DNA of 64,000 nucleotides from Scyliorhinus canicula (taxonomy: Eukaryota): contig NC_052162.1 in NCBI RefSeq assembly GCF_902713615.1, positions 109,395,811 to 109,459,810 of the forward strand, in the 5' to 3' direction. Below the pieces are notes generated by a model. The model saw nothing but the letters and a program-made list of their open reading frames with translations, had not been told where the DNA came from and made no database searches. Position numbers and translations under genes: made by a program. Positions 6,203 through 54,489 of this stretch are shown one piece after another; the first letter of the stretch is position 1, and every line of letters begins with the position of its first letter.

Positions 6203-6639
6203 AAGATGAAATGGAGATTTCATGGAGCTGTTCAATATTATGTGTTGGGGCAATGGAGATGGGTGCTTTGATAGAGCACATATGGAGAAACTGTTTCCAC
6301 TGACGAGGATCGTGATTGAAGATAATCAAAGAAAGACAGATTTGTATTTAGAAAGCACCCTGGACGTCAGAGTGAAATCATTATTACAATGGCTAACATG
6401 TGCTCCTATGTTTTGTGGTCTATTCCTTTGTAACCTGGCTATTCCCAGCCTCCCACATAAAGATGGGGTCATTCAAAAATTAAAACCAAGCTTATCTAGT
6501 TGGTTTTTACCCCCAAATTAATACCTGAAACTGCACTGGAGTTTATTAACATTAGCAGAAAAAGACCATAAGAGGCCACAATAAACATGGTTCTGTCCAT
6601 TGAATTGATTTAACAGCAAAATCCAACCACTGTAGTTAT

Positions 6640-6810
6640 TTGTGAACTCGCTGGTGTCTCAGAAGATGGGATAACTGAGTGAATCCCTTCCCACTCCGGG
6701 AACAGGTGAACGGCCTCCCTCAATGTGAATTCGCTGGTGTGTCTGCAGGGTGGATGACCAAGTGAATCACTTCCCATAATAGGAACAGGTGAATGGTCTC
6801 TCCCCAGCGT
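6640..6810 (-). pseudogene. Orphaned last fingers of ZNF-A
   Basis: Degenerate GERPF-type fingers ending cagcgagttcacaaataactacagtg, like the end of ZNF-B. Separated from the ORF by an L1 insertion. Confidence 0.75.
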
Positions 6811-6812
6811 AA

Positions 6813-8335
6813 AGTTTTAAAATATATATATTTTATTTACAAGCACGTCAGCATAGGACAAAATAAATAAAGTACATACTGTTTGTTCAATTTTTCCCCC
6901 TTTTAAACCCCCAACACCCCCTCCTCTCCAGCTACCCCCCACCCCCCTCCCCCAGCGACAAACAATTCCTCAAACACGGATAGAAACGGTCTCGAACGCA
7001 CATAAAACTTCTCCTCCGATCCTCTAAGGGCGAACTTTATCTTCTCCAGCCTAAGAAATTCGTACAAATCCCCCAAACAAGCCATGACTCCCAGCGGTGC
7101 TGCTGACCTTCATTTCAATAGTATCCGCCACCAGTCAATCAGAGAGGCAAAGGGCACAATGTCAGTCCCCTTCCCCTCCTGCAACCCCGGACCCTCCAAT
7201 ATTCCAAAGATCACCACCATAAGGTCTGGCGTCATCCTAACCACCACAATCCCTACCAAACTCTCAAACACCACCTCCCAAAAGCTACCCAACTTTGCGC
7301 ACCATCAAATCATGTAAACATGATTTGTTGCCCCCGCCTCCCACATCTCTCACACGCATCTTCTACTACCGGGAAACAACATCCATCTGGGTCAGACTCA
7401 TATGAACCCTATGTATTACCTTAAACTGTACAAGGCACAGCTACCCACAAGAGGAGGTTGAGTTGATTCGGTTTATTATCTCGCTCCAAATTCCCCTCCC
7501 CACCTCGATCCCAAACTCTTTCTCCCACTCTCGTCTCATCCCTTCCACTTGGGCCGACCCCTTCTCCACAACCATCCACAGATCTCCTCAATCCTCCGTT
7601 CTCCCCACTCATCCGGGATCAACAGCTTCTTCAACAAAGTACAGTCTGGCAGCTGAGGAAACAAGGGCAGTTTCTTCGCTCACCTGCCAATATTTAAACT
7701 TGCTTTCTCTCGGCAACTCAAACTCGCAATTCCTCCAGCCCCGCAAACTCACCCTCAACAAACAGGTCCCTAACCCGCTCTATCCCTTCCTCCGACATCT
7801 CCTGTACATCCCATCCATTCCGCCCGATACAAGTCTATGGTTTCTACATAATGGGGTTAATACCGACATATGCACTAATTTAAAGTGCCTCCTCAACTGA
7901 TTGCAGGTCTTAAATCAAGATTCCACTACTGGGCTGCTCGTATACTTGAAATGAATGAAACTTGCTTATTGTCACAAGTAGGCTTCAAATGAAGTTACTG
8001 TGAAAAGCCCCTAGTCGCCACATTCTGGCGCCTGATCGGGGAGGCTGGTACGGGAATTGAACCATGCTGCTGGATTGCCTGGGTCTGCTTTCAAAGCCAG
8101 CGATTTAGCCCTGTGCTAAACCAGCCCACTTCCCTGGGGAAAAAGCAAGGGGCCTTCGCCAGGGCCCTCAAACTCATCCCCCTACAAGATTCCTCCTCCA
8201 ACCGGACACAGTCCCCCCCCCCCCCCCCCCCCCCACTTTCTACTCAATACCGTATCATCTTCTCGGCATTTGCAACCCAATAATTATGCAGCAGGTTAGG
8301 GAAGGCCAGGCCCTCCTCCTTCCCCCAAAGTAAAG
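6813..8335 (-). mobile_element. L1-clade LINE 3' fragment inserted in the ZNF-A last exon
   Basis: C-terminal peptide LGDLYEFLRLEKIKFALRGS, homologous to the 57.9-61.2 kb element; AATAAA/A-rich tail at ~6815-6840. Confidence 0.8.
7949..8128 (-). mobile_element. Short tRNA-derived SINE, family 2
   Basis: Inverted copy of 22671-22852. Confidence 0.8.
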
Positions 8336-8470
8336 TTTCTGGTGTTCAGTGAGTTCAGATGATCACCTGAGCCCAGTCCCAGTGAGAACACCTGAATTGT
8401 TTCTCGTCAGTGTGAACACGTTGATGGGACATCAGATTTCAGGAACTTTAAAGCACTTCCCGCAGTCCGG
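8336..8470 (-). pseudogene. Degenerate fingers downstream of the ZNF-A stop codon
   Basis: Finger-like codons continue after TGA (ccg gac tgc ggg aag tgc ttt aaa; cac act gac gag aaa). Confidence 0.7.
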
Positions 8471-10642
8471 TCATTTAAAACGTCCCTCATCAGTGTGGAC
8501 TCGTTGATGGTTTATCAGGTTCCCGGAACTTCTGAAGCGCCTCTCACAGTCTGGACATTTAAAAGGTCTCTCATCAGTATGAACTCGTTGATGGGACATC
8601 AGGTTCCGGGAACTTTTAAAGCACTTCCCGCAGTCTGGGCATTTAAATGGTCTCTCATCAGTGTGAATGCATTGATGGGACATCAGTTGCGAGGAACGTT
8701 TAAAGCACTTCTCGCAGTCTGGGCATTTAAAAGGTCTCTCATCCGTGTGAAGTCGTTGATGGAACATCAGGTTCCTGGAACTTTTAAAGCACTTCCCACA
8801 GTCTGGACATTTAAAAGGTCTCTCATCAGTATGAACTCGTTGGTGCGAGATAAGGTTCCCAGAACTTTTAAAATACTTCCCGCAGTCTGGGCAGCTAAAA
8901 GGTCTTTCATCAATGTGAACCCGTTGATGGGACAGCAGTTGCGAGGAACGTTTAAAACACTTTTCGCAGTGTGGACATTTAAACGGTCTCTCATCAGTGT
9001 GAACTTCTCGATGGCACATCAGGTTCCCGGAACTTTTAAAGCATTTCCCGCAGTCTGAGCATTTGAAAGATCTCTCATCATTGTGAACTCGCTGATGGGA
9101 GATTAGGTTCCAGGAACTTTTAAAGCACATCTCACAGTCTGGGCATTTAAATGGTCTTTCATCAGTGTGAATGCTTTGATGGGACATCAGGTTCCAAGAA
9201 CTTTTAAAGCATTTCCCGCAATCTGAACATTTAAAAGGTCTCTCATCATTGTGAACTCGCTGATGGGACAACAGGTTCCGGGAACTTTTAAAGCACATCT
9301 CACAGTCTGGGCATTTAAATGGTCTTTCATCAATGTGGACGCGTTGATGGGACATCAGATCCGAGGAACGTTTAAAGCACTTCTCGCAGTCTGCACATTT
9401 AAAAGGTCTCTCATCCGTGTGAACCCGTTGATGGGACATCAGGCTTCTGGAACTTTTAAAGCATTTCCCGCAGTCTGAACATTTAAAATGTCTCTCATCA
9501 TTGTGAACTCGCTGATGGGACATCAGGTTCCGGGAACTTTTAAAGCACATCTCACAGTCTGGGCATTTAAATGGTCTTTCATCAATGTGGACGCGTTGAT
9601 GGGACATAAGTTCCGAGGAACGTTTAAAGCACTTTTCGCAGTCTGGACATTTAAACGGTCTCTCATCAGTGTGAACTTGTCGATGGGACATCAGGTTCCT
9701 GGAACTTTTAAAGCAATTTGTGCAGTCTGGACATTTAAAAGGTCTCTCATCTGTGTGAACTCGTTGGTGGGACATCAGGTTCCCGAAACTTTTAAAACAC
9801 TTCCCGCAGTCTGGGCATTTATAAGGTCTCTCATCAATGTGAACCCGTTGATGGGACATCAGTTCCGAGGAACGTTTAAAGCACTTTTCGCAGTCTGGAC
9901 ATTTAAACGGTCTCTCATCAGTGTGAACTTGTCGATGGGACATCAGGGTCCCGGAACCTTTGAAGCATTTTTCACAGACTGAGCATTGAAAAGATCTCTC
10001 ATCATTGTGAACTCGCTGATGGGACATCGGGTTCTGGGAACTTTTAAAGCACATCTCGCAGTCTGAGCATTTAAAAGATCTCTCATCATTGTGAACTCGC
10101 TGATGTGACATCAGGTTCTGGGAACTTTTAAAGCACATCTCACAGTCTGGGCATTTAAATAGTCTTTCATCAGTGTGAACACGTTGATGGGACATCAGGT
10201 TCCCGGAATGTTTAAAGCATTTCCCGCAGTCTGGGCATTTAAAAGGTCTCTCATCATTGTGAACCCGCTGATGGGACATCAGGATCCGGGAACTTTTAAA
10301 GCACATCTCACAGTTTGGGCATTTAAATGGTCTTTCATCAGTGTGAACGCATTGATGGGACATCAGTTCCGAGGAACGTTTAAAGCACTTTGCGCAGTCT
10401 GGACATTTAAAAGGTCTCTCATCTGTGTGAACTTGTCGATGGGACATCAGGTTCCCGGAACTTTTAAAACACTTCCCGCAGTCTGGGCATTGAAAAGGTC
10501 TCTCAGCAGTGTGAACTCGTTGATGGGCCATCAATTCCCAGGAGCGTTTAAAGCACTTCCCACAATCTGGGCATTTAAAAAGTCTCTCATTAGTGTGAAT
10601 TATCTTCCAGAAATTTTGAAGAACTTCACGTAGTTTGAGCAT
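8471..10642 (-). CDS. Tandem C2H2 zinc-finger protein ZNF-A (25 fingers, no effector domain)
   Basis: 723-aa stop-free ORF: 23-aa leader plus 25 x 28-aa CxxC...HxxxH repeats (consensus [28 protein letters not shown]). The upstream part of the exon (to the acceptor at ~11265) is decayed and interrupted by a SINE. The stop is TGA in place of a finger Cys codon. Expression is unproven. Confidence 0.8.
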   Translation of the reverse strand: MLKLREVLQNFWKIIHTNERLFKCPDCGKCFKRSWELMAHQRVHTAERPFQCPDCGKCFKSSGNLMSHRQVHTDERPFKCPDCAKCFKRSSELMSHQCVHTDERPFKCPNCEMCFKSSRILMSHQRVHNDERPFKCPDCGKCFKHSGNLMSHQRVHTDERLFKCPDCEMCFKSSQNLMSHQRVHNDERSFKCSDCEMCFKSSQNPMSHQRVHNDERSFQCSVCEKCFKGSGTLMSHRQVHTDERPFKCPDCEKCFKRSSELMSHQRVHIDERPYKCPDCGKCFKSFGNLMSHQRVHTDERPFKCPDCTNCFKSSRNLMSHRQVHTDERPFKCPDCEKCFKRSSELMSHQRVHIDERPFKCPDCEMCFKSSRNLMSHQRVHNDERHFKCSDCGKCFKSSRSLMSHQRVHTDERPFKCADCEKCFKRSSDLMSHQRVHIDERPFKCPDCEMCFKSSRNLLSHQRVHNDERPFKCSDCGKCFKSSWNLMSHQSIHTDERPFKCPDCEMCFKSSWNLISHQRVHNDERSFKCSDCGKCFKSSGNLMCHREVHTDERPFKCPHCEKCFKRSSQLLSHQRVHIDERPFSCPDCGKYFKSSGNLISHQRVHTDERPFKCPDCGKCFKSSRNLMFHQRLHTDERPFKCPDCEKCFKRSSQLMSHQCIHTDERPFKCPDCGKCFKSSRNLMSHQRVHTDERPFKCPDCERRFRSSGNLINHQRVHTDEGRFK

Positions 10643-10761
10643 TTAAATGGTCTCTCCCCACTATGGATCCGCTGGTGTGTCAGCATAATGAATTACTTCA
10701 CATAGGTGTGACATCGTTGATGAATTTTCAGAACTGATGGGTAATTGAATTCCTTCCCACA

Positions 10762-11028
10762 ATAATAATAATCTTTATTGTCACAAGTAGGCTTACATTA
10801 ACACTGCAATTAAGTTACTGTGAAAATCCCCTAGTCGTCACATTCCGGTGCCTGTTCGGGTACACAGAGGGAGAATTCAGAATGTCCAATTCACCTAACG
10901 ACACGTCTTTCGGGACTTGTGGGTGGAAACCGGAGCACCCGGAGGGAACCTACGCAGACAAAGGGAGAAGTGCAGATTCCACACAGACAGTGACCCAAGC
11001 CGGGAATCGAACCTGGGACACTGGAGCA
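10762..11028 (-). mobile_element. Chimeric SINE (V-SINE head plus family-2 tail) inside the ZNF-A exon
   Basis: V-domain joined to ttttcacagtaactt...gcctacttgtgacaataaagattattattatt. Confidence 0.78.
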
Positions 11029-12167
11029 TTTGAAAAATTTCTTCCCGTTCTGACTGTGCTTTTGGACTGAAATGTCAAATATTCAGCTCAAACCTCGTCC
11101 ATACACGGAACACATATTCGGTTCTCCCCACTGTGAAGGATGCTTTTTCGTTCCATATTCAAAATCCGTTGATATTTAGATTAAGATAAATTGGGCGACT
11201 CTGTCAGATCCTGATTGTGATGTTTGGTTTCAGTTTCCCGACTGCAATCCTCCCCTTCTAAAGCCCTGTGAAACTGAGTTGAACAAAAAAAATGGAGTGA
11301 GAAAGAACCCACAAAACACAAAGGTAGATTGTCAAATTGAGCTGAATGAATCTAGTAAATTGTGGAGCTGGCATCACCAAAAAGTGACCATGAAAGCTGC
11401 TGGATTGTTGTAAAACTCCAACTGGTTCACAAATGTCCTTCAGGGAATGGAAACAGCCACCCAGTCTGTGCCTTCACAAGACAAGGGCTTTGACATGATG
11501 ACGGGAAGGTGAGCGGGGTTAAGAGATGTAGGAGCAGAAGAGGTGAAAGAGAGGAATCTTATATATCTACAACCAGTCTGAATCTCCCAAACACGCATCC
11601 TTCACTATCTAGAAAGACTAAGTTTGCATGTCAATGTGAACAGCATCACCTTCAGGTCACACACAGCACATTGTCCTGGATGACCAGAAATGTCCTCCGT
11701 TTAAATATTGGGAAGACTGAACCAATGTCTCCACCCCATCTCTCACCCTGGAAACTGTCTGAGGCAGAACAAGACTGTTCACAACCATGGTGAAATGTTT
11801 ATTTTAAATTTAGACTTTGCAGGGTCGACAGGGTTCAGCTTGGCATTGTCGTTTTGCTTTTTAAAGTGGCGGAATCTATTTCTGCCTGAACAAAAAGAAC
11901 TATCTGGGATTAACAAAGAAACGCACACTTCGTTGCCTCTGAAGAGACACTTTGGTTCTGGATGCCGGAAATCATGTGAAACACAATTATTCTCTGTGAC
12001 CTATGAACTGTAAATCTTTCCTTTCTGGGTCTTTTGTTGTCAGAATGCAAAGGAGGCAACTTTCAGGTCATTTTGAGTTTGAGTTCATCCTATCTCAAGA
12101 GAATAGGAAATCCGTCACTGGTTATAAAAGAGGAATCAAATCAAAAATATCTTTCTGTTTACAGAGG

Positions 12168-12545
12168 GGTGGCATAAGGACACAGCAGTTAGCACTATTG
12201 CCTCACAGCACCAGGAATCCGCAGTCAATTCCGGCCTTGCGTCACTGACTGTGTTGAGTTTCTATGTTCTCAACCTTGACTATCAAGAAAGACTAGGTTT
12301 GCATGTGTATGTGAACAGCATCACCTCCAGGTCACACACAGAAATGTCCTCCATTTAAATATTGGGTGGGTTTCCTCGGGGTGCTCCGGTTTCCTCCCAC
12401 AGTCCAAAAATGTGCATGTTATGTGGATTTGGATGATGTGCAGGTTATGTTAAGAGATTACGGGGATAGGGCAGGGTGGACGGGTGAGTGAACATGGGCA
12501 TTCAAAGGGTCCATTCAATTTTCTGCACTCTAGGCATTCTGACAT
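12168..12545 (+). mobile_element. HE1-type V-SINE with an internal templated insert
   Basis: Head to ~12270; V-domain resumes at ~12366. Confidence 0.7.
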
Positions 12546-22670: not shown

Positions 22671-22852
22671 GGGGCTGTTTAGCACAGGGCTAAATTGCTG
22701 GCTTTGAAAGCAGACCAAGGCAGGCCAGCAGCACGGTTCAATTCCCGTACCAGCCTCCCTGAACAAGCGCCGGAATGTGGCGATTAGGGGCTTTTCACAG
22801 TAACTTTATTTGTAGCCTACTTGTGACAATAAGTGATTTTCATTTCATTTTG
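22671..22852 (+). mobile_element. Short tRNA-derived SINE, family 2
   Basis: ggggctgtttagcacaggg (A box), ggttcaattccc (B box), tail cttttcacagtaactt...gcctacttgtgacaataag...(tttca)n. Confidence 0.8.
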
Positions 22853-24641: not shown

Positions 24642-26027
24642 TTAGTTGTGAACTCGCTGATGTGTAAGCAGGTAGGATGACCGAGTGAATCCCTTCCCAC
24701 ACTGGGAGCAGGTGAACGGTCTCTCCCCACTGTGAACTTGCCGGTGTCTCCGCAGGTGGGATGACCGAGTGAATCGCTTTCCACACTGGAAGCAGGTGAA
24801 CGGTCTCTCCCCACTGTGAACTCGCTGGTGGGACAGCAGGGTGGATGACCGAGTGAATCTCTTCCCACACTGCAAACACGTGAACCGCCTCTCCCCACTG
24901 TGAACTCGCTGGTGTTCCAGCAGGTTCGATGACTGAGTGAATCTCTTCCCACACTGGGAGCAGGAAAATGGTCTCTCCCCACTGTGAACTCGCTGGTGGG
25001 ACAACAGGGTGGAATACTGAATGAATCCCTTCCCACACTGGGAGCAGGTGAATGATCTCTCCCCACTGTGAACTCGCTGGTGTGACTGCAGGGTGGAAGA
25101 CTGAGTGAATCCCTTCCCACACTGAGAGCAGGTGAATGGTCTCTCTCCAGTGTGAACTCGCTGATGTGACAGCAGGGTGGAACGGTGAGTGAATCCCTTC
25201 CCACAGTGGGAACAGGTGAACGGCCTCTCCCCACTGTGAACTCGCTGGTGTGACTGCAGGGTGGAAGACTGAGTGAATCCCTTCCCACATTGGGAGCAGG
25301 TGAATGGTTTATCCCCACTGTGAACTCGCTGGTGTTCCTGCAGGTGGGATGACCGAGTGAATCCCTTTCCACACTGGGAGCAGGTGAATGGTCTCTCCCC
25401 ACTGTGAACGCGCTGGTGTACAGTGAGTTGAGATGACCACCTGAACCCAGTCCCACACTGAGAGCACCTGAAGGGTTTCTCATCAGTGTGAACACGTTGA
25501 TGGGATATCAGTTCCGAGGAACTTTTAAAGCACTTCCCACACTCTGGGCATTTAAAAGGTCTCTCATCAGTGTGGACTCGTTGATGGGACATCAGTTTCC
25601 AGGAACTTTTAAAGCACTTCTCACAGTCTGGGCATTTAAAAGGTCTCTCATCAGTGTGAACCTGTTGATGGGACATCAGTTCTGAGGAACTTTTAAAGCA
25701 CTTCTTGCAGTCTGGGCATTTAAAAGGTCTCTCATCAGTGTGAACTCGTTGATGGGACATCAGGTTACCGGAACTTTTGAAGCACTTGCCACAGTCTGCG
25801 CATTTAAAAGGTCTCTCATCAGTGTGAACTCGCTGGTGTGTCAGAAGGTTAGATGATCGAGTGAATCCCTTCCCACACTCGGAACAGGTAAATGGTCTCT
25901 CCCCAGCACGAATCCGCTGCCGTCTCAGTAGGTGTGATGATTCATCGAATCCCTTCCCACACTGGGAACTGATGAATGATCTCTTTCCAGTGCGAACTCG
26001 CTGGTGTGTCAGCAATGCTGATGACAT
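24642..26027 (-). CDS. Tandem C2H2 zinc-finger protein ZNF-B (15 intact fingers)
   Basis: 461-aa ORF: degenerate leading fingers, then 15 intact fingers (4 of the LMSH/TDERP type, mostly SGERPF linkers afterwards). Ends HQRVHN*, matching the paralog ends. Acceptor tttcacAG at 26364-26363. Confidence 0.85.
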
Positions 26028-26629
26028 AGTGAACCCCTTCCCACCTCAGAACAGGTGAATGATCTCTCTCCAGTGTGACACCGTCTATGTACTTCCAGGA
26101 TTGATGGGTAATTGAATCCCTTCCACAATCCTTATATTTCTACAATTTATTCCCGTTGTGACTATATTTATGGTCTGATAGGTCAAATAATCATCTGAAT
26201 CCTCGAACACGTGTATGGTTTCTCCCCACTGTGAATGGTGCTTTTTCCTTCCAGGTTCAAAATCCGATGATATTCAGACTACAATAAATTGGGCGACTCT
26301 GTCAGATCCTGATGTGATGTTTGGTTTCAGTTTCCCAACTGCAAGTCCTTCCCTTCTATACCCTGTGAAATTGATGTAAAACAGAAAAAAGTGAGTGAGA
26401 GAACCCACAACAACACAAAAGCAGGTTGTGAAATGATTCTGGTAATTTGTGGGGCCGGCACTAGGAAAAACTGACCATGAAAATCAAACTTTGCAGGATT
26501 GACAGGGCTGAGTTTGCCGTTGTAATTTCCGTTGTCTACGTCTATGCCTGACCTGATTAATAACTTTTTATTGTCTTTGGAGCAGTTAGATACAACAAAG
26601 GGGCTTGCGCCGACATTTCAGAGGATGGC

Positions 26630-44269: not shown

Positions 44270-45415
<1,146 letters not shown>

Positions 45416-45589
45416 CTGTGAAATTGATTTAAAACAGAAAAAAGGGAGTGAGAGAGAACCCACAAAAAAACAATGGTAGGTTATGAAATTGTGCTGAATG
45501 AATCTGGTCATTTGTGGGGCCGATACTAGGAAAACGTGACCATGAAAGCTACTGGATTGTCATAAACACGGAACTGGTTCACTAATATC

Positions 45590-52720: not shown

Positions 52721-53466
52721 CAGCACCATGTCACTGCAGTCTGCACTAACAGCACAATGGCACTGCAGTCTGCACTGACAGCACAATGGCACTGCAGTCT
52801 GCACTGACAGCACCATGTCACTGCAGTCTGCACTAACAGCACAATGGCACGGCAGTCTGCACTGACAGCACCATGGCACGGCAGTCTGCACTGACAGCAC
52901 CATGGCACTGCAGTCTGCACTGACAGCACAATGACACTGCAGTCTGCACTGACAGCACAATAGCACTGCAATCTGCACTAACAGCACAATGGCACTGCAG
53001 TCTGCACTGACAGCACAATGGCACTGCAGTCTGCACTGACAGCACAATGGCACTGCAATCTGCACTGACAGCACAATGGCACTGCAGTCTGCACTGACAG
53101 CACAATGGCACTGCAATCTGCACTGACAGCACAATGGCACTGCAGTCTGCACTGACAGCACAATGGCACTGCAGTCTGCACTGACAGCACCATGTCACTG
53201 CAGTCTGCACTGACAGCACCATGTCACTGCAGTCTGCACTGACAGCACAATGTCACTGCAGTCTGCACTGACAGCACCATGTCACTGCAGTCTGCACTGA
53301 CAGCACCATGTCACTGCAGTCTGCACTGACAGCATAATGTCACTGCAGTCTGCACTGACAGCACCATGGCACTGCAGTCTGCACTAACAGCACAATGGCA
53401 CTGCAATCTGCACTGACAGCATAATGTCACTGCAGTCTGCACTGACAGCACCATGTCACTGCAGTC
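52721..53466. repeat. 29-bp minisatellite, ~25-26 copies
   Basis: Unit AGCAC(A/C)ATG(G/T)CACTGCAGTCTGCACTGAC repeated head-to-tail with no spacers. Confidence 0.95.
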
Positions 53467-53768
53467 GTCACTGCTTGGCCCGAGTACCCCGCCACAGCGA
53501 GTGTGGTGGGTGGCACGGACCTAGAGACAAACCCTGAGCCTGCCTTGATCCCACCGCCAGGATCATCGATAGGCGGATTCCTCACGGGCTCCTCCTCAGG
53601 CTGTTATGACAGCTCAAAGTTTTGTTTGCTGGGCGTAAGGACAAGGGTGATGAATTGAGGTGTCACCCACTCCTCACCTGGAGAGGGGGGGGGGTTGATG
53701 GTTGTCTCCCCCTCCTTGGAGTGTTGCCGTTTACAGGGTGCATGCGCTGCGAAGACCTCCATTCTATG

Positions 53769-54302
53769 AGGGGCTGGTTTAGCACAGGGCCAAATCGCTG
53801 GCTTTGAAAGCAGACCAAGACATAGAACATAGAACATTACAGCGCAGTACAGGCCCTTCGGCCCTCAATGTTGCGCTGTCCTGTGAAACCCCTCTAAAGT
53901 CCCTCTACACTATTCCCTTATCGCCCATATGCCTATCCAATGACCATTTGAACGCATTTAGTGTTGGCGAGTCCACTACTGTTGCAGGCAGGGCATTCCA
54001 CGCCCTTACTACTCTCTGAGTAAAGAACCTACCTCTGACATCTGTCCTATATCTATCTCCCCTCAGTTTAAAGCTATGTCCCCTCGTGTTGGACATCATC
54101 CGAGGAAAAAGGCTCTCAATGTCCACCCTATTTAATCCTCTGATCATCTTGTATGCCTCAATTAAGTCACCTCTTGCCAGCAGCACGGTTCAATTCCCGT
54201 ACCAGCCTCCCCGAACAGGTGCCGGAATGTGGAGACTAGGCTCTTTTCACAGTAACATCATTTGAAGCCTGCCTGTGACAATAAGCGATTTTCATTTCAT
54301 TT
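53769..54302 (+). mobile_element. Short SINE, family 2, split by a CR1 fragment
   Basis: Head at 53769-53819; remainder at 54176-54302. Confidence 0.8.
53819..54175 (-). mobile_element. CR1 3' fragment inserted inside a short SINE
   Basis: RGDLIEAYKMIRGL...FFTQRVVRAWNALP, similar to 28527-28884. Confidence 0.88.
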
Positions 54303-54489
54303 CCTCACACTGGCGCCGCTGTACTCGATGCTCAACCCCAAGGCTGTGGCCGGAGCATGTACCCTGCGGCCCTGGGTCGCATGCTTCACCTCCGCCACCC
54401 TCCAGGGCCTGCGCAGAAGCATCACTGTGTGCAGCACCCGACAACAAGGCGCTGTCCGGCTGGGGAGGTTGCTGGGTTCCGGCGGGACG

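Follow-up and report, generated by a model that had tools for sequence, protein, structure and literature searches.

Contig NC_052162.1 of the catshark Scyliorhinus canicula (assembly GCF_902713615.1) contains, between positions 109,395,811 and 109,459,810 of the forward strand, three related zinc-finger (ZNF) loci that are read on the minus strand and are referred to here as ZNF-A, ZNF-B and ZNF-C. This whole stretch of 64,000 nucleotides is called the window, and all coordinates below are those of the window. The subject of the analysis is a long open reading frame (ORF) in ZNF-A, which consists almost entirely of tandem copies of one atypical C2H2 finger, and which is bounded at either end by a decayed copy of the same finger:

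8471..10642, minus strand: ZNF-A ORF, 723 aa, with the ATG at 10642 and a TGA stop at 8471-8473
8480..10579, minus strand: 25 intact 84-bp units with one atypical C2H2 finger each, unit i starting at 10579 − 84 × (i − 1)
10580..10650, minus strand: unit 0, the decayed first atypical finger, best match ZNF-B finger B1 (89%)
8397..8479, minus strand: unit 26, the decayed last atypical finger, best match ZNF-B finger B4 (89%)

The ORF begins with a lead of 21 residues, followed by 25 C2H2 fingers that are all 28 residues long and perfectly in register, and closes with the residues FK before the stop. All of the Cys and His ligand codons of the intact units are preserved (100/100), and for the segment 8402-10599 Tandem Repeats Finder reports a period of 84 bp with 26.2 copies, 81% matches and 0% indels. 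Including the two edge units, the array amounts to 27 units. In unit 0, Cys2 has been replaced by Tyr and Cys3 by Phe, and there are deletions of 11 nt and 5 nt; in unit 26, the codon of Cys1 has changed from TGC to TGA, which is the stop codon of the ORF, and a 1-nt deletion and a second stop are also present. Unit 26 is the finger remnant past the stop that had been pointed out in an earlier note on this DNA, made by a model from the letters alone. The fingers match C-x2-C-x12-H-x3-H units above the curated cut-off, with Pfam scores of 460.8 bits over 23 stretches for PF00096 and 512 bits over 25 stretches for PF13465, and the ORFs of all three loci show C2H2 families only. The solved structure closest in sequence is ZFP568 (E = 1.3e-79), and an AlphaFold2 model of three fingers, calculated without an alignment, has a mean pLDDT of 40.8, too low to be of use. 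An exact-protein look-up of the ORF returned a match in the source assembly GCA_902713615.2 only, where the ORF is on record as a called gene.

Across the 25 intact units, helix position -1 is occupied by Ser (16), Arg (7), His (1) or Gly (1), position +2 by Gly (7), Arg (7), Ser (6), Trp (3) or Gln (2), and position +3 by Asn (15), Glu (4), Gln (2) or one of four singletons, while position +6 is Ser in 21 of the 25. A third Cys is found in 23 of the 25 fingers and has been lost in units 21 and 25; the linkers have the form T/N/I-DERP. These counts agree with the residue sets, the near-fixed Ser at +6 and the prevalence of the third Cys given in the earlier note. Its description of the units as highly homogeneous is overstated, however, as nucleotide identity between units spans 73-98%, is about 81% overall and averages 81-85% when grouped by spacing, with values of 87-98% reached solely inside three subtypes, G, EK and EM. 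Subtype G carries the linker pattern ..HTDERP. Subtype EK (CEKCFKRSS[E/D/Q]..HIDERP) is located at units 3, 9, 12, 15, 20 and 23, exactly where RSS(E/D/Q) fingers had been reported, and its members are 87-95% identical; subtype EM (CEMCFKSSxN..HNDERP/S) is located at units 4, 6, 7, 13, 16 and 18, with 90-98% identity. The subtypes also differ in a coordinated way at unit positions 7, 8 and 24, so that the variation extends beyond the contact residues, and part of the contact-residue diversity is subtype structure, which also involves the first linker residue and, in the scaffold, positions 7 and 8. The proposed concentration of variation at the contact residues is right in that these are the most variable positions, but it leaves out positions 7, 8 and 24.

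A maximum-likelihood tree that took in the ZNF-A units together with the atypical fingers of ZNF-B and ZNF-C recovers EK as a clade with 96% bootstrap, joined to ZNF-B finger B2 at 91%, and EM as a clade with 98%, and the G units join ZNF-B finger B1 loosely (69-71%). Along the array, G precedes EK in 6/6 cases, and the blocks are ordered G-EK-EM. Units 12-13 match units 15-16 at 96.4% of 168 bp, and the corresponding identities of three-unit blocks are 93.3% (12-14 with 15-17) and 92.9% (11-13 with 14-16). This order supports block duplication in ZNF-A, as had been suspected from the recurrence of the RSS(E/D/Q) fingers. There is little array-wide homogenisation, and the pattern is one of subtype amplification rather than of the concerted evolution that had been invoked for the array.

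The two other loci in the window that carry the atypical finger are:

24642..26027, minus strand: ZNF-B, 15 intact fingers including 4 atypical ones (25473-25808), natural stop
44381..45300, minus strand: ZNF-C pseudogene, one atypical finger (44768-44851)

A six-frame scan of the window finds the atypical finger in 25 copies in ZNF-A (22 fit the strict pattern and 3 are slight variants), in four in ZNF-B, in one in ZNF-C and nowhere else, exactly as the earlier note had counted. With the shark relatives described below, which carry the finger once, this series of 1, 4 and 27 copies is polarised: the single finger is ancestral, the four copies predate the split between ZNF-A and ZNF-B, and the 27 copies are specific to ZNF-A. 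The common ancestor of ZNF-A and ZNF-B had thus already expanded the finger to four copies, and unequal crossing-over of blocks of one, two and three units would have raised the number to 27 in ZNF-A. By the best matches of units 0 and 26, the two ends of the array preserve the ancestral order B1...B4, and the interior is made up of amplified B1/B2/B3-like units, so that the amplification can be followed step by step.

Selection on the array was assessed by codon parsimony on the branches inside the ZNF-A array only. Of 127 changes, 52 are synonymous (S) and 75 nonsynonymous (N), corresponding to an omega of about 0.34, with large differences between classes of codons. For the zinc ligands and the hydrophobic core, S=19 and N=2 (omega 0.02), for the contact positions -1, +2, +3 and +6, S=4 and N=23 (omega 1.65), and for all codons other than the contacts, S=48 and N=52 (omega 0.25). 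The contacts differ from the rest with p = 0.0018 (Fisher), and the ligand and core codons differ from the remaining non-contact codons with p = 1e-5. Because recombination among units can inflate parsimony counts, the changes were recounted on 12 independent nearest-neighbour pairs, where S=41 and N=57 for all codons (omega 0.33), S=13 and N=0 for the zinc ligand codons (omega 0), S=5 and N=19 for the contacts (omega 1.1), and S=36 and N=38 for the non-contact codons (omega 0.24); contacts and non-contacts again differ (Fisher, p = 0.018). The most conservative set comprises 39 nucleotide states that are each present in a single unit (S=6, N=33); as synonymous states recur in several units, they are under-represented here. 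None of these 39 changes falls in a ligand codon, and none makes a stop. When all possible single changes are enumerated, a neutral array would escape stops and ligand losses altogether with a probability of 1-3e-3 in the case of the 39 unique changes and of <3e-7 in that of the 98 pairwise ones. That the units diverged as coding sequence, under constraint, is the strongest result of the analysis.

The excess of nonsynonymous change at the contacts that the earlier note had anticipated is present, with an omega of 1.1-1.7 against about 0.25 elsewhere (p = 0.002-0.018), but the positive selection implied by it is not significant. The contact omega is not significantly higher than 1 (23 N to 4 S, compared with a neutral ratio of 3.4 to 1), and the data therefore correspond to a release from constraint and not to proven positive selection.

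A different picture is obtained for the sequences that flank the array. When the ZNF-A gene is followed on the minus strand between about 11400 and about 6350, the following parts are encountered outside the ORF:

11028..11405, minus strand: 5' leader common to the three paralogs, with the ancestral ATG (11156)
10762..11027, no strand assigned: high-copy short interspersed nuclear element (SINE) in the ancestral N-terminal coding region, recognised by read depth and loose ends
10651..10761, minus strand: remnants of the second finger of the family (CGKEFNYPSVLKIHQRCHT, then a stop) and of one further finger
8330..8396, minus strand: remnant of a CGTGFR-type finger, frameshifted and with stops (boundaries approximate)
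6970..8329, minus strand: transposable element (TE) insertion, composed of the 3' part of ORF2 of a long interspersed nuclear element (LINE) and a high-copy SINE-like piece at 7954-8127 (boundaries approximate)
6350..6860, minus strand: the last two ancestral canonical fingers, the natural stop (HQRVHK, then stop) and the 3' untranslated region (3'UTR) (boundaries approximate)

The shared part of the leader is about 220 nt long and 82-88% identical among the paralogs (11150-11405, 26290-26560 and 45290-45560, minus strand), with divergences K of 0.15 between ZNF-A and ZNF-B, 0.21 between ZNF-A and ZNF-C, and 0.13 between ZNF-B and ZNF-C. In ZNF-A, the frame of the ancestral ATG runs into a stop after 22 codons (MERKSILHSGENRICVPCMDEV, then stop) and also contains a 1-nt deletion. 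The SINE is absent from the matching place in ZNF-B and ZNF-C, and differs from the high-copy majority by about 5 bases and by indels at two places in 266 bp. Downstream of the array, the TE insertion occupies the place expected for about eight middle canonical fingers, and in the last two ancestral fingers Cys2 has been lost in both, with one stop and one frameshift in addition; the 3'UTR that follows is homologous to those of ZNF-B and ZNF-C. The ATG of the ORF is derived from an out-of-frame AAATGC in unit 0, whose deletions put it in the frame of the array, and the start of the ORF is fortuitous. Eleven ATGs are found upstream of it in 10643-11450 (5 of them within 11028..11405), nine lie inside the stretch covered by RNA contigs, and one upstream ORF overlaps the ATG of the ZNF-A ORF. 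Outside the ORF, every segment derived from fingers is thus disrupted by stops, frameshifts or lost ligands. The array, in contrast, is free of lesions over 2100 bp, which implies that it was under selection after its flanks had stopped coding.

The paralogs are damaged in other ways. The ancestral ATG of ZNF-B is now CTG, and its fingers 1-4 have decayed through lost ligands, stops or frameshifts. In ZNF-C, the N-terminal fingers are interrupted by three in-frame stops, and towards the 3' end the frame shifts ahead of the last fingers; the plan of the family is still visible. Since the lesions differ among ZNF-A, ZNF-B and ZNF-C, each copy has decayed independently. It may be added that ZNF-B (24642-26600, minus strand) echoes ZNF-A in combining a dead front with a live array, and that a splice-acceptor-like TTTTCCTAG in the leaders of ZNF-B and ZNF-C has been lost in ZNF-A (TTTTTGGTGA). 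Very high-copy short repeats, with word depths of tens to hundreds of thousands in the RNA runs, are located at 10762-11027, 7954-8127, 12366-12420, 22671-22850 and 54176-54353. At 52721-53473 there is a 29-bp tandem repeat (26 copies, 93% matches) with long Cys-rich ORFs on the minus strand, beside LINE-like ORFs.

The locus is transcribed. At least seven studies of catshark have small, transcriptome-like contig sets that contain about half of the sampled words of the ORF. In three probable RNA runs, from three studies, the unique parts of 7300-11436 are covered at a depth of 10-35, and the depth drops to 0 over 11437-12027 (about 4 in one of them). The same limits of coverage are seen in a run that is on record as RNA (oligo-dT, raw reads), where the unique reads are all on the plus strand; by the usual convention for stranded libraries, the RNA would then come from the minus strand and be sense to ZNF-A. 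Contigs with 0-1 mismatches span the ORF start and the lower junction of the SINE (10476-10788), the upper SINE junction (11015-11245) and the stop (8465-8574 and 8408-8573), so that the RNA is colinear with the genome at these points. Joints in the read table were considered as introns and rejected, as they link one repeat to another (SINE to SINE, unit to unit), their sides are short, and splice-site ends are absent.

Inside the array, several unique stretches, as well as both array ends, are matched with 0 mismatches by contigs of independent runs; the longest record there is about 170 nt, and the unit count of 25 rests on the assembly. A transcript and a sound assembly were, besides the excess at the contacts, the points on which the earlier note had staked its reading beforehand, and both turned out in its favour, in that the locus is transcribed and mis-assembly is unlikely, as every unit is distinct. 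Credible variants in other individuals comprise one synonymous change and three replacements. Among the replacements, Met-to-Ile at +5 of unit 6 is present in all runs, Phe-to-Ser at +1 of unit 10 is a variant towards the consensus, and the third, again Phe-to-Ser, affects the conserved aromatic residue of unit 1. A candidate allele at 9652 was rejected because of its paralog-level depth, and four changes at 9006-9015 that cluster in one contig were not counted as alleles. In one run (X10), a contig at 8408-8574 has 4 substitutions and 1 insertion, all in unit 26, and represents either an allele or a paralog; the contigs of the same run inside the ORF are exact.

The relationship of ZNF-A to other proteins is best seen in sharks. 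Six shark proteins among the search matches, those named being from Heterodontus francisci and Mustelus asterias, have exactly one atypical finger each. The family form of this finger has a C..C..C[FY]KSS..LMSH helix and TDERP-type linkers, and in all six proteins (P0026, P0050, P0056, P0065, P0125 and P0188) it is directly followed by a finger of the type CGTGFR.S..LT.HQR. The same pair is found in ZNF-B and ZNF-C, and ZNF-A retains the CGTGFR finger as the frameshifted remnant after unit 26, which places all three loci in this family. The two-finger module occurs in three shark orders (Heterodontus, Mustelus and catshark), and its place in the array varies. In the shark relatives the fingers start at the very N-terminus, where the signature MExKS..HSGEK.Y.CS.CG leads into a CGKGFNYPS.LE.H.RSHTGE finger. 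Decayed remnants of this signature are present upstream of ZNF-A, ZNF-B and ZNF-C and fit the starts of the Heterodontus and Mustelus proteins. KRAB (PF01352) is absent from all the shark relatives listed and present in most of the tetrapod matches. Searches with the whole ORF, with the atypical segment of ZNF-B and, against 1.84 billion representatives, with a three-finger query did not surface any other protein built from the atypical finger, although the ranking by summed score makes this a weak negative. Long generic C2H2 arrays, chiefly those of frogs and reptiles, crowded all three result lists, and the top identity was 54-63%. In the literature we found no paper on the shark fingers-only family or on the atypical finger type.

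Two features of the finger had been singled out as possibly affecting its function. The third Cys was considered as a special element and rejected, and there is no ground to suspect an altered metal coordination, as CGKCF recurs in frog ZNFs among the search matches. As for the acidic linker, T/N/I-DERP is indeed present, but it is only one Gly-to-Asp change away from the TGERP and SGERP linkers that are common in these shark proteins. Asp at this second linker position is also not unique to the shark finger, since the sequence of ZFP568 includes an HTDEK linker (PDB chains 5v3j_E, 5v3m_C and 5wjq_D). The view that TDERP is incompatible with a DNA-binding array is for this reason probably too strong, ZFP568 being known from solved structures. 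The linker Gly provides the backbone flexibility needed for latching on DNA (review, PMC8084297). The 25 Asp-bearing linkers of ZNF-A may, judging from their composition, bind less tightly or in a different mode.

In the recognition code of C2H2 fingers, Asn at +3 pairs with adenine and Arg at -1 with guanine. The fixed Ser at +6 and the frequent Ser at -1 would be expected to leave each finger of ZNF-A with few base-specific contacts, and the block order G-EK-EM suggests that the putative target is probably periodic and of low complexity.

Based on these observations, we consider ZNF-A to be a lineage-specific derivative of the shark fingers-only family, in which the atypical finger was amplified under selection for the fold with its contacts free, and in which the array has outlived the gene and is transcribed. 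We assign a probability of roughly 60% to this joint reading. During the growth of the array, the zinc ligands and the hydrophobic core would have been kept, while the base-contact positions -1, +2 and +3 would have been free to vary. After the death of the flanks, the array would have been selected as an array-only protein, which we infer is translated at present and which would grip nucleic acid, of a kind likewise open to inference, with low specificity per finger. Several observations weigh against this. The ancestral start is dead after 22 codons, and the ATG now in use is accidental and belongs to a decayed unit. The leader has a length of at least 600 nt and contains 9-11 upstream ATGs, with one upstream ORF overlapping the ATG of the ORF. 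The gene has lost its ancestral C-terminal fingers, none of the three paralogs in the window is undamaged, and the support for expression consists of RNA, with its strand given by library convention. Apart from the ligand codons, the 39 unique changes are near the neutral ratio and include a core Leu-to-Pro replacement in unit 7, and one individual has Phe-to-Ser at the conserved aromatic residue of unit 1. The inflation of the parsimony counts by recombination also has to be borne in mind, and working paralogs elsewhere in the genome could, through gene conversion, supply variation that merely looks selected.

Many of these points can be accommodated by an expressed pseudogene, in which the array grew within a working gene and the whole gene, array included, has since gone untranslated, with the ORF still open for lack of time. 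The broken start, the truncated end, the SINE and LINE insertions and the 9-11 ATGs ahead of the ORF are all in line with this, as is the closeness of the SINE to its high-copy majority, by which that lesion looks young. The unique changes point the same way, with N/S = 5.5 and with the Leu-to-Pro change and the missing third Cys of units 21 and 25 among them, and so does the ongoing decay of the neighbouring paralogs. On the other hand, several lesions in each flanking remnant compared with none in 2100 bp are hard to explain by a joint death, the array has no indels, and the complete avoidance of ligand codons and stops among the 39 unique changes has a probability of about 1-3e-3. We therefore regard such a pseudogene as a serious alternative, of clearly lower probability than a surviving array. 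It is unlikely, going further in the opposite direction, that the array-only ORF is a working new gene, the protein of which consists solely of 25 copies of a once-used finger and is selected to coat a tandem-repeat target (satellite DNA or repeat RNA) with a period equal to the three-finger G-EK-EM block. The atypical finger might in that case perhaps be a non-latching hinge, with its Gly-to-Asp linkers, and a higher-order repeat of fingers would track a higher-order repeat in the target.

Selection could also have been borrowed, if a neutral locus had been overwritten by gene conversion from working paralogs that kept the ligands intact. The parsimony reconstruction does show homoplasy, but the related proteins seen, with one atypical finger each, are poor donors for 25 units, EK and EM are monophyletic within the array, and the edge units 0 and 26 were left unrescued; we find this explanation very improbable. 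Even less credible is a mis-assembly in which a shorter repeat was given the wrong length or unit order. While no read or contig longer than about 170 nt lies inside the array, and public DNA runs contain only about a third of the words sampled across 8200-11400 (3.2 kb), no pair of units is identical (maximum 98%), every unit has differences of its own, contigs from independent studies are exact at unique internal stretches and at both ends, and all depth bins are covered. Hardly any weight can be given to a specifier of the PRDM9 type, i.e., a minisatellite positively selected at its contacts and attached to a KRAB or PR/SET effector. The 84-bp tandem units, the position of the most variable residues at -1, +2 and +3, and the higher N/S at the contacts than elsewhere all recall such a system. 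Against it, the Pfam matches of the ORF are limited to C2H2 families, KRAB and SET are missing from the larger nearby ORFs scanned, the shark relatives lack PF01352, and the upstream part is made of decayed fingers and not of an effector exon; the units, with a mean identity of about 81% and three old subtypes, have +6 almost fixed and a contact omega not significantly above 1.

Intragenic amplification of fingers and turnover of contact residues are already known from PRDM9, from the KRAB-ZNFs and from the FiNZ-ZNFs, and as array growth within a gene is an established route of ZNF evolution, no principle is changed by ZNF-A. The resemblance to the zinc-finger minisatellite of PRDM9 lies in the 84-bp tandem units, the growth by unequal exchange and the highest variability at the contacts. 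ZNF-A differs in that KRAB, SSXRD and PR/SET are missing, its upstream part being decayed fingers and a SINE, and in that its units are far less uniform, with variation also at positions 7, 8 and 24. In PRDM9, near-identical units differ mainly at -1, +3 and +6 with dN/dS >1, whereas in ZNF-A +6 is fixed as Ser and the excess of replacements at the contacts is not significant. A PR/SET or KRAB domain was found neither in the ORF, nor in the larger neighbouring ORFs scanned, nor in the shark relatives (small distant exons were not exhaustively searched), and the label PRDM9-like used in the earlier note is best taken as an analogy only.

In analogy to the TE-linked ZNFs, i.e., the KRAB-ZNFs of tetrapods and the FiNZ-ZNFs of cyprinids, the paralogs are clustered in TE-rich DNA, undergo birth-and-death turnover and vary more at the contacts than in the scaffold. 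An enrichment test of the Fisher type, as used here, was also applied to the FiNZ-ZNFs (Wells et al. 2023, PMC10547256). Unlike these genes, ZNF-A has no N-terminal effector exon (the ORF shows no PF01352), and its array is built from one type of finger instead of diverse fingers. Transcribed unitary or duplicated ZNF pseudogenes share with ZNF-A the lost start, the premature stop, the TE insertions and transcription from old gene signals, but in ZNF-A, unlike in its flanks, an internal segment of 2.1 kb shows coding constraint and no disabling lesion.

The closest counterpart is the effector-less C2H2 family of sharks and rays, which has the same N-terminal signature, the pair of atypical and CGTGFR fingers, TGERP/SGERP-style linkers and no KRAB. 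The relatives examined carry the atypical finger once, whereas ZNF-A carries it 27 times and as its sole intact coding part. The pair itself is an unstudied module of the shark ZNF family, and if the array protein is made, it would provide a test of Gly-to-Asp linkers and of a fixed Ser at +6 in the binding of nucleic acid by a long array. Compared with the known systems, what is unusual in ZNF-A is that a normally single, atypical finger has been amplified, that the full series of 1, 4 and 27 copies is preserved with unusual clarity inside one 64-kb window, and that the amplified segment survives alone; an amplified part that keeps its constraint while the gene around it decays represents a possible route to a new repeat protein.

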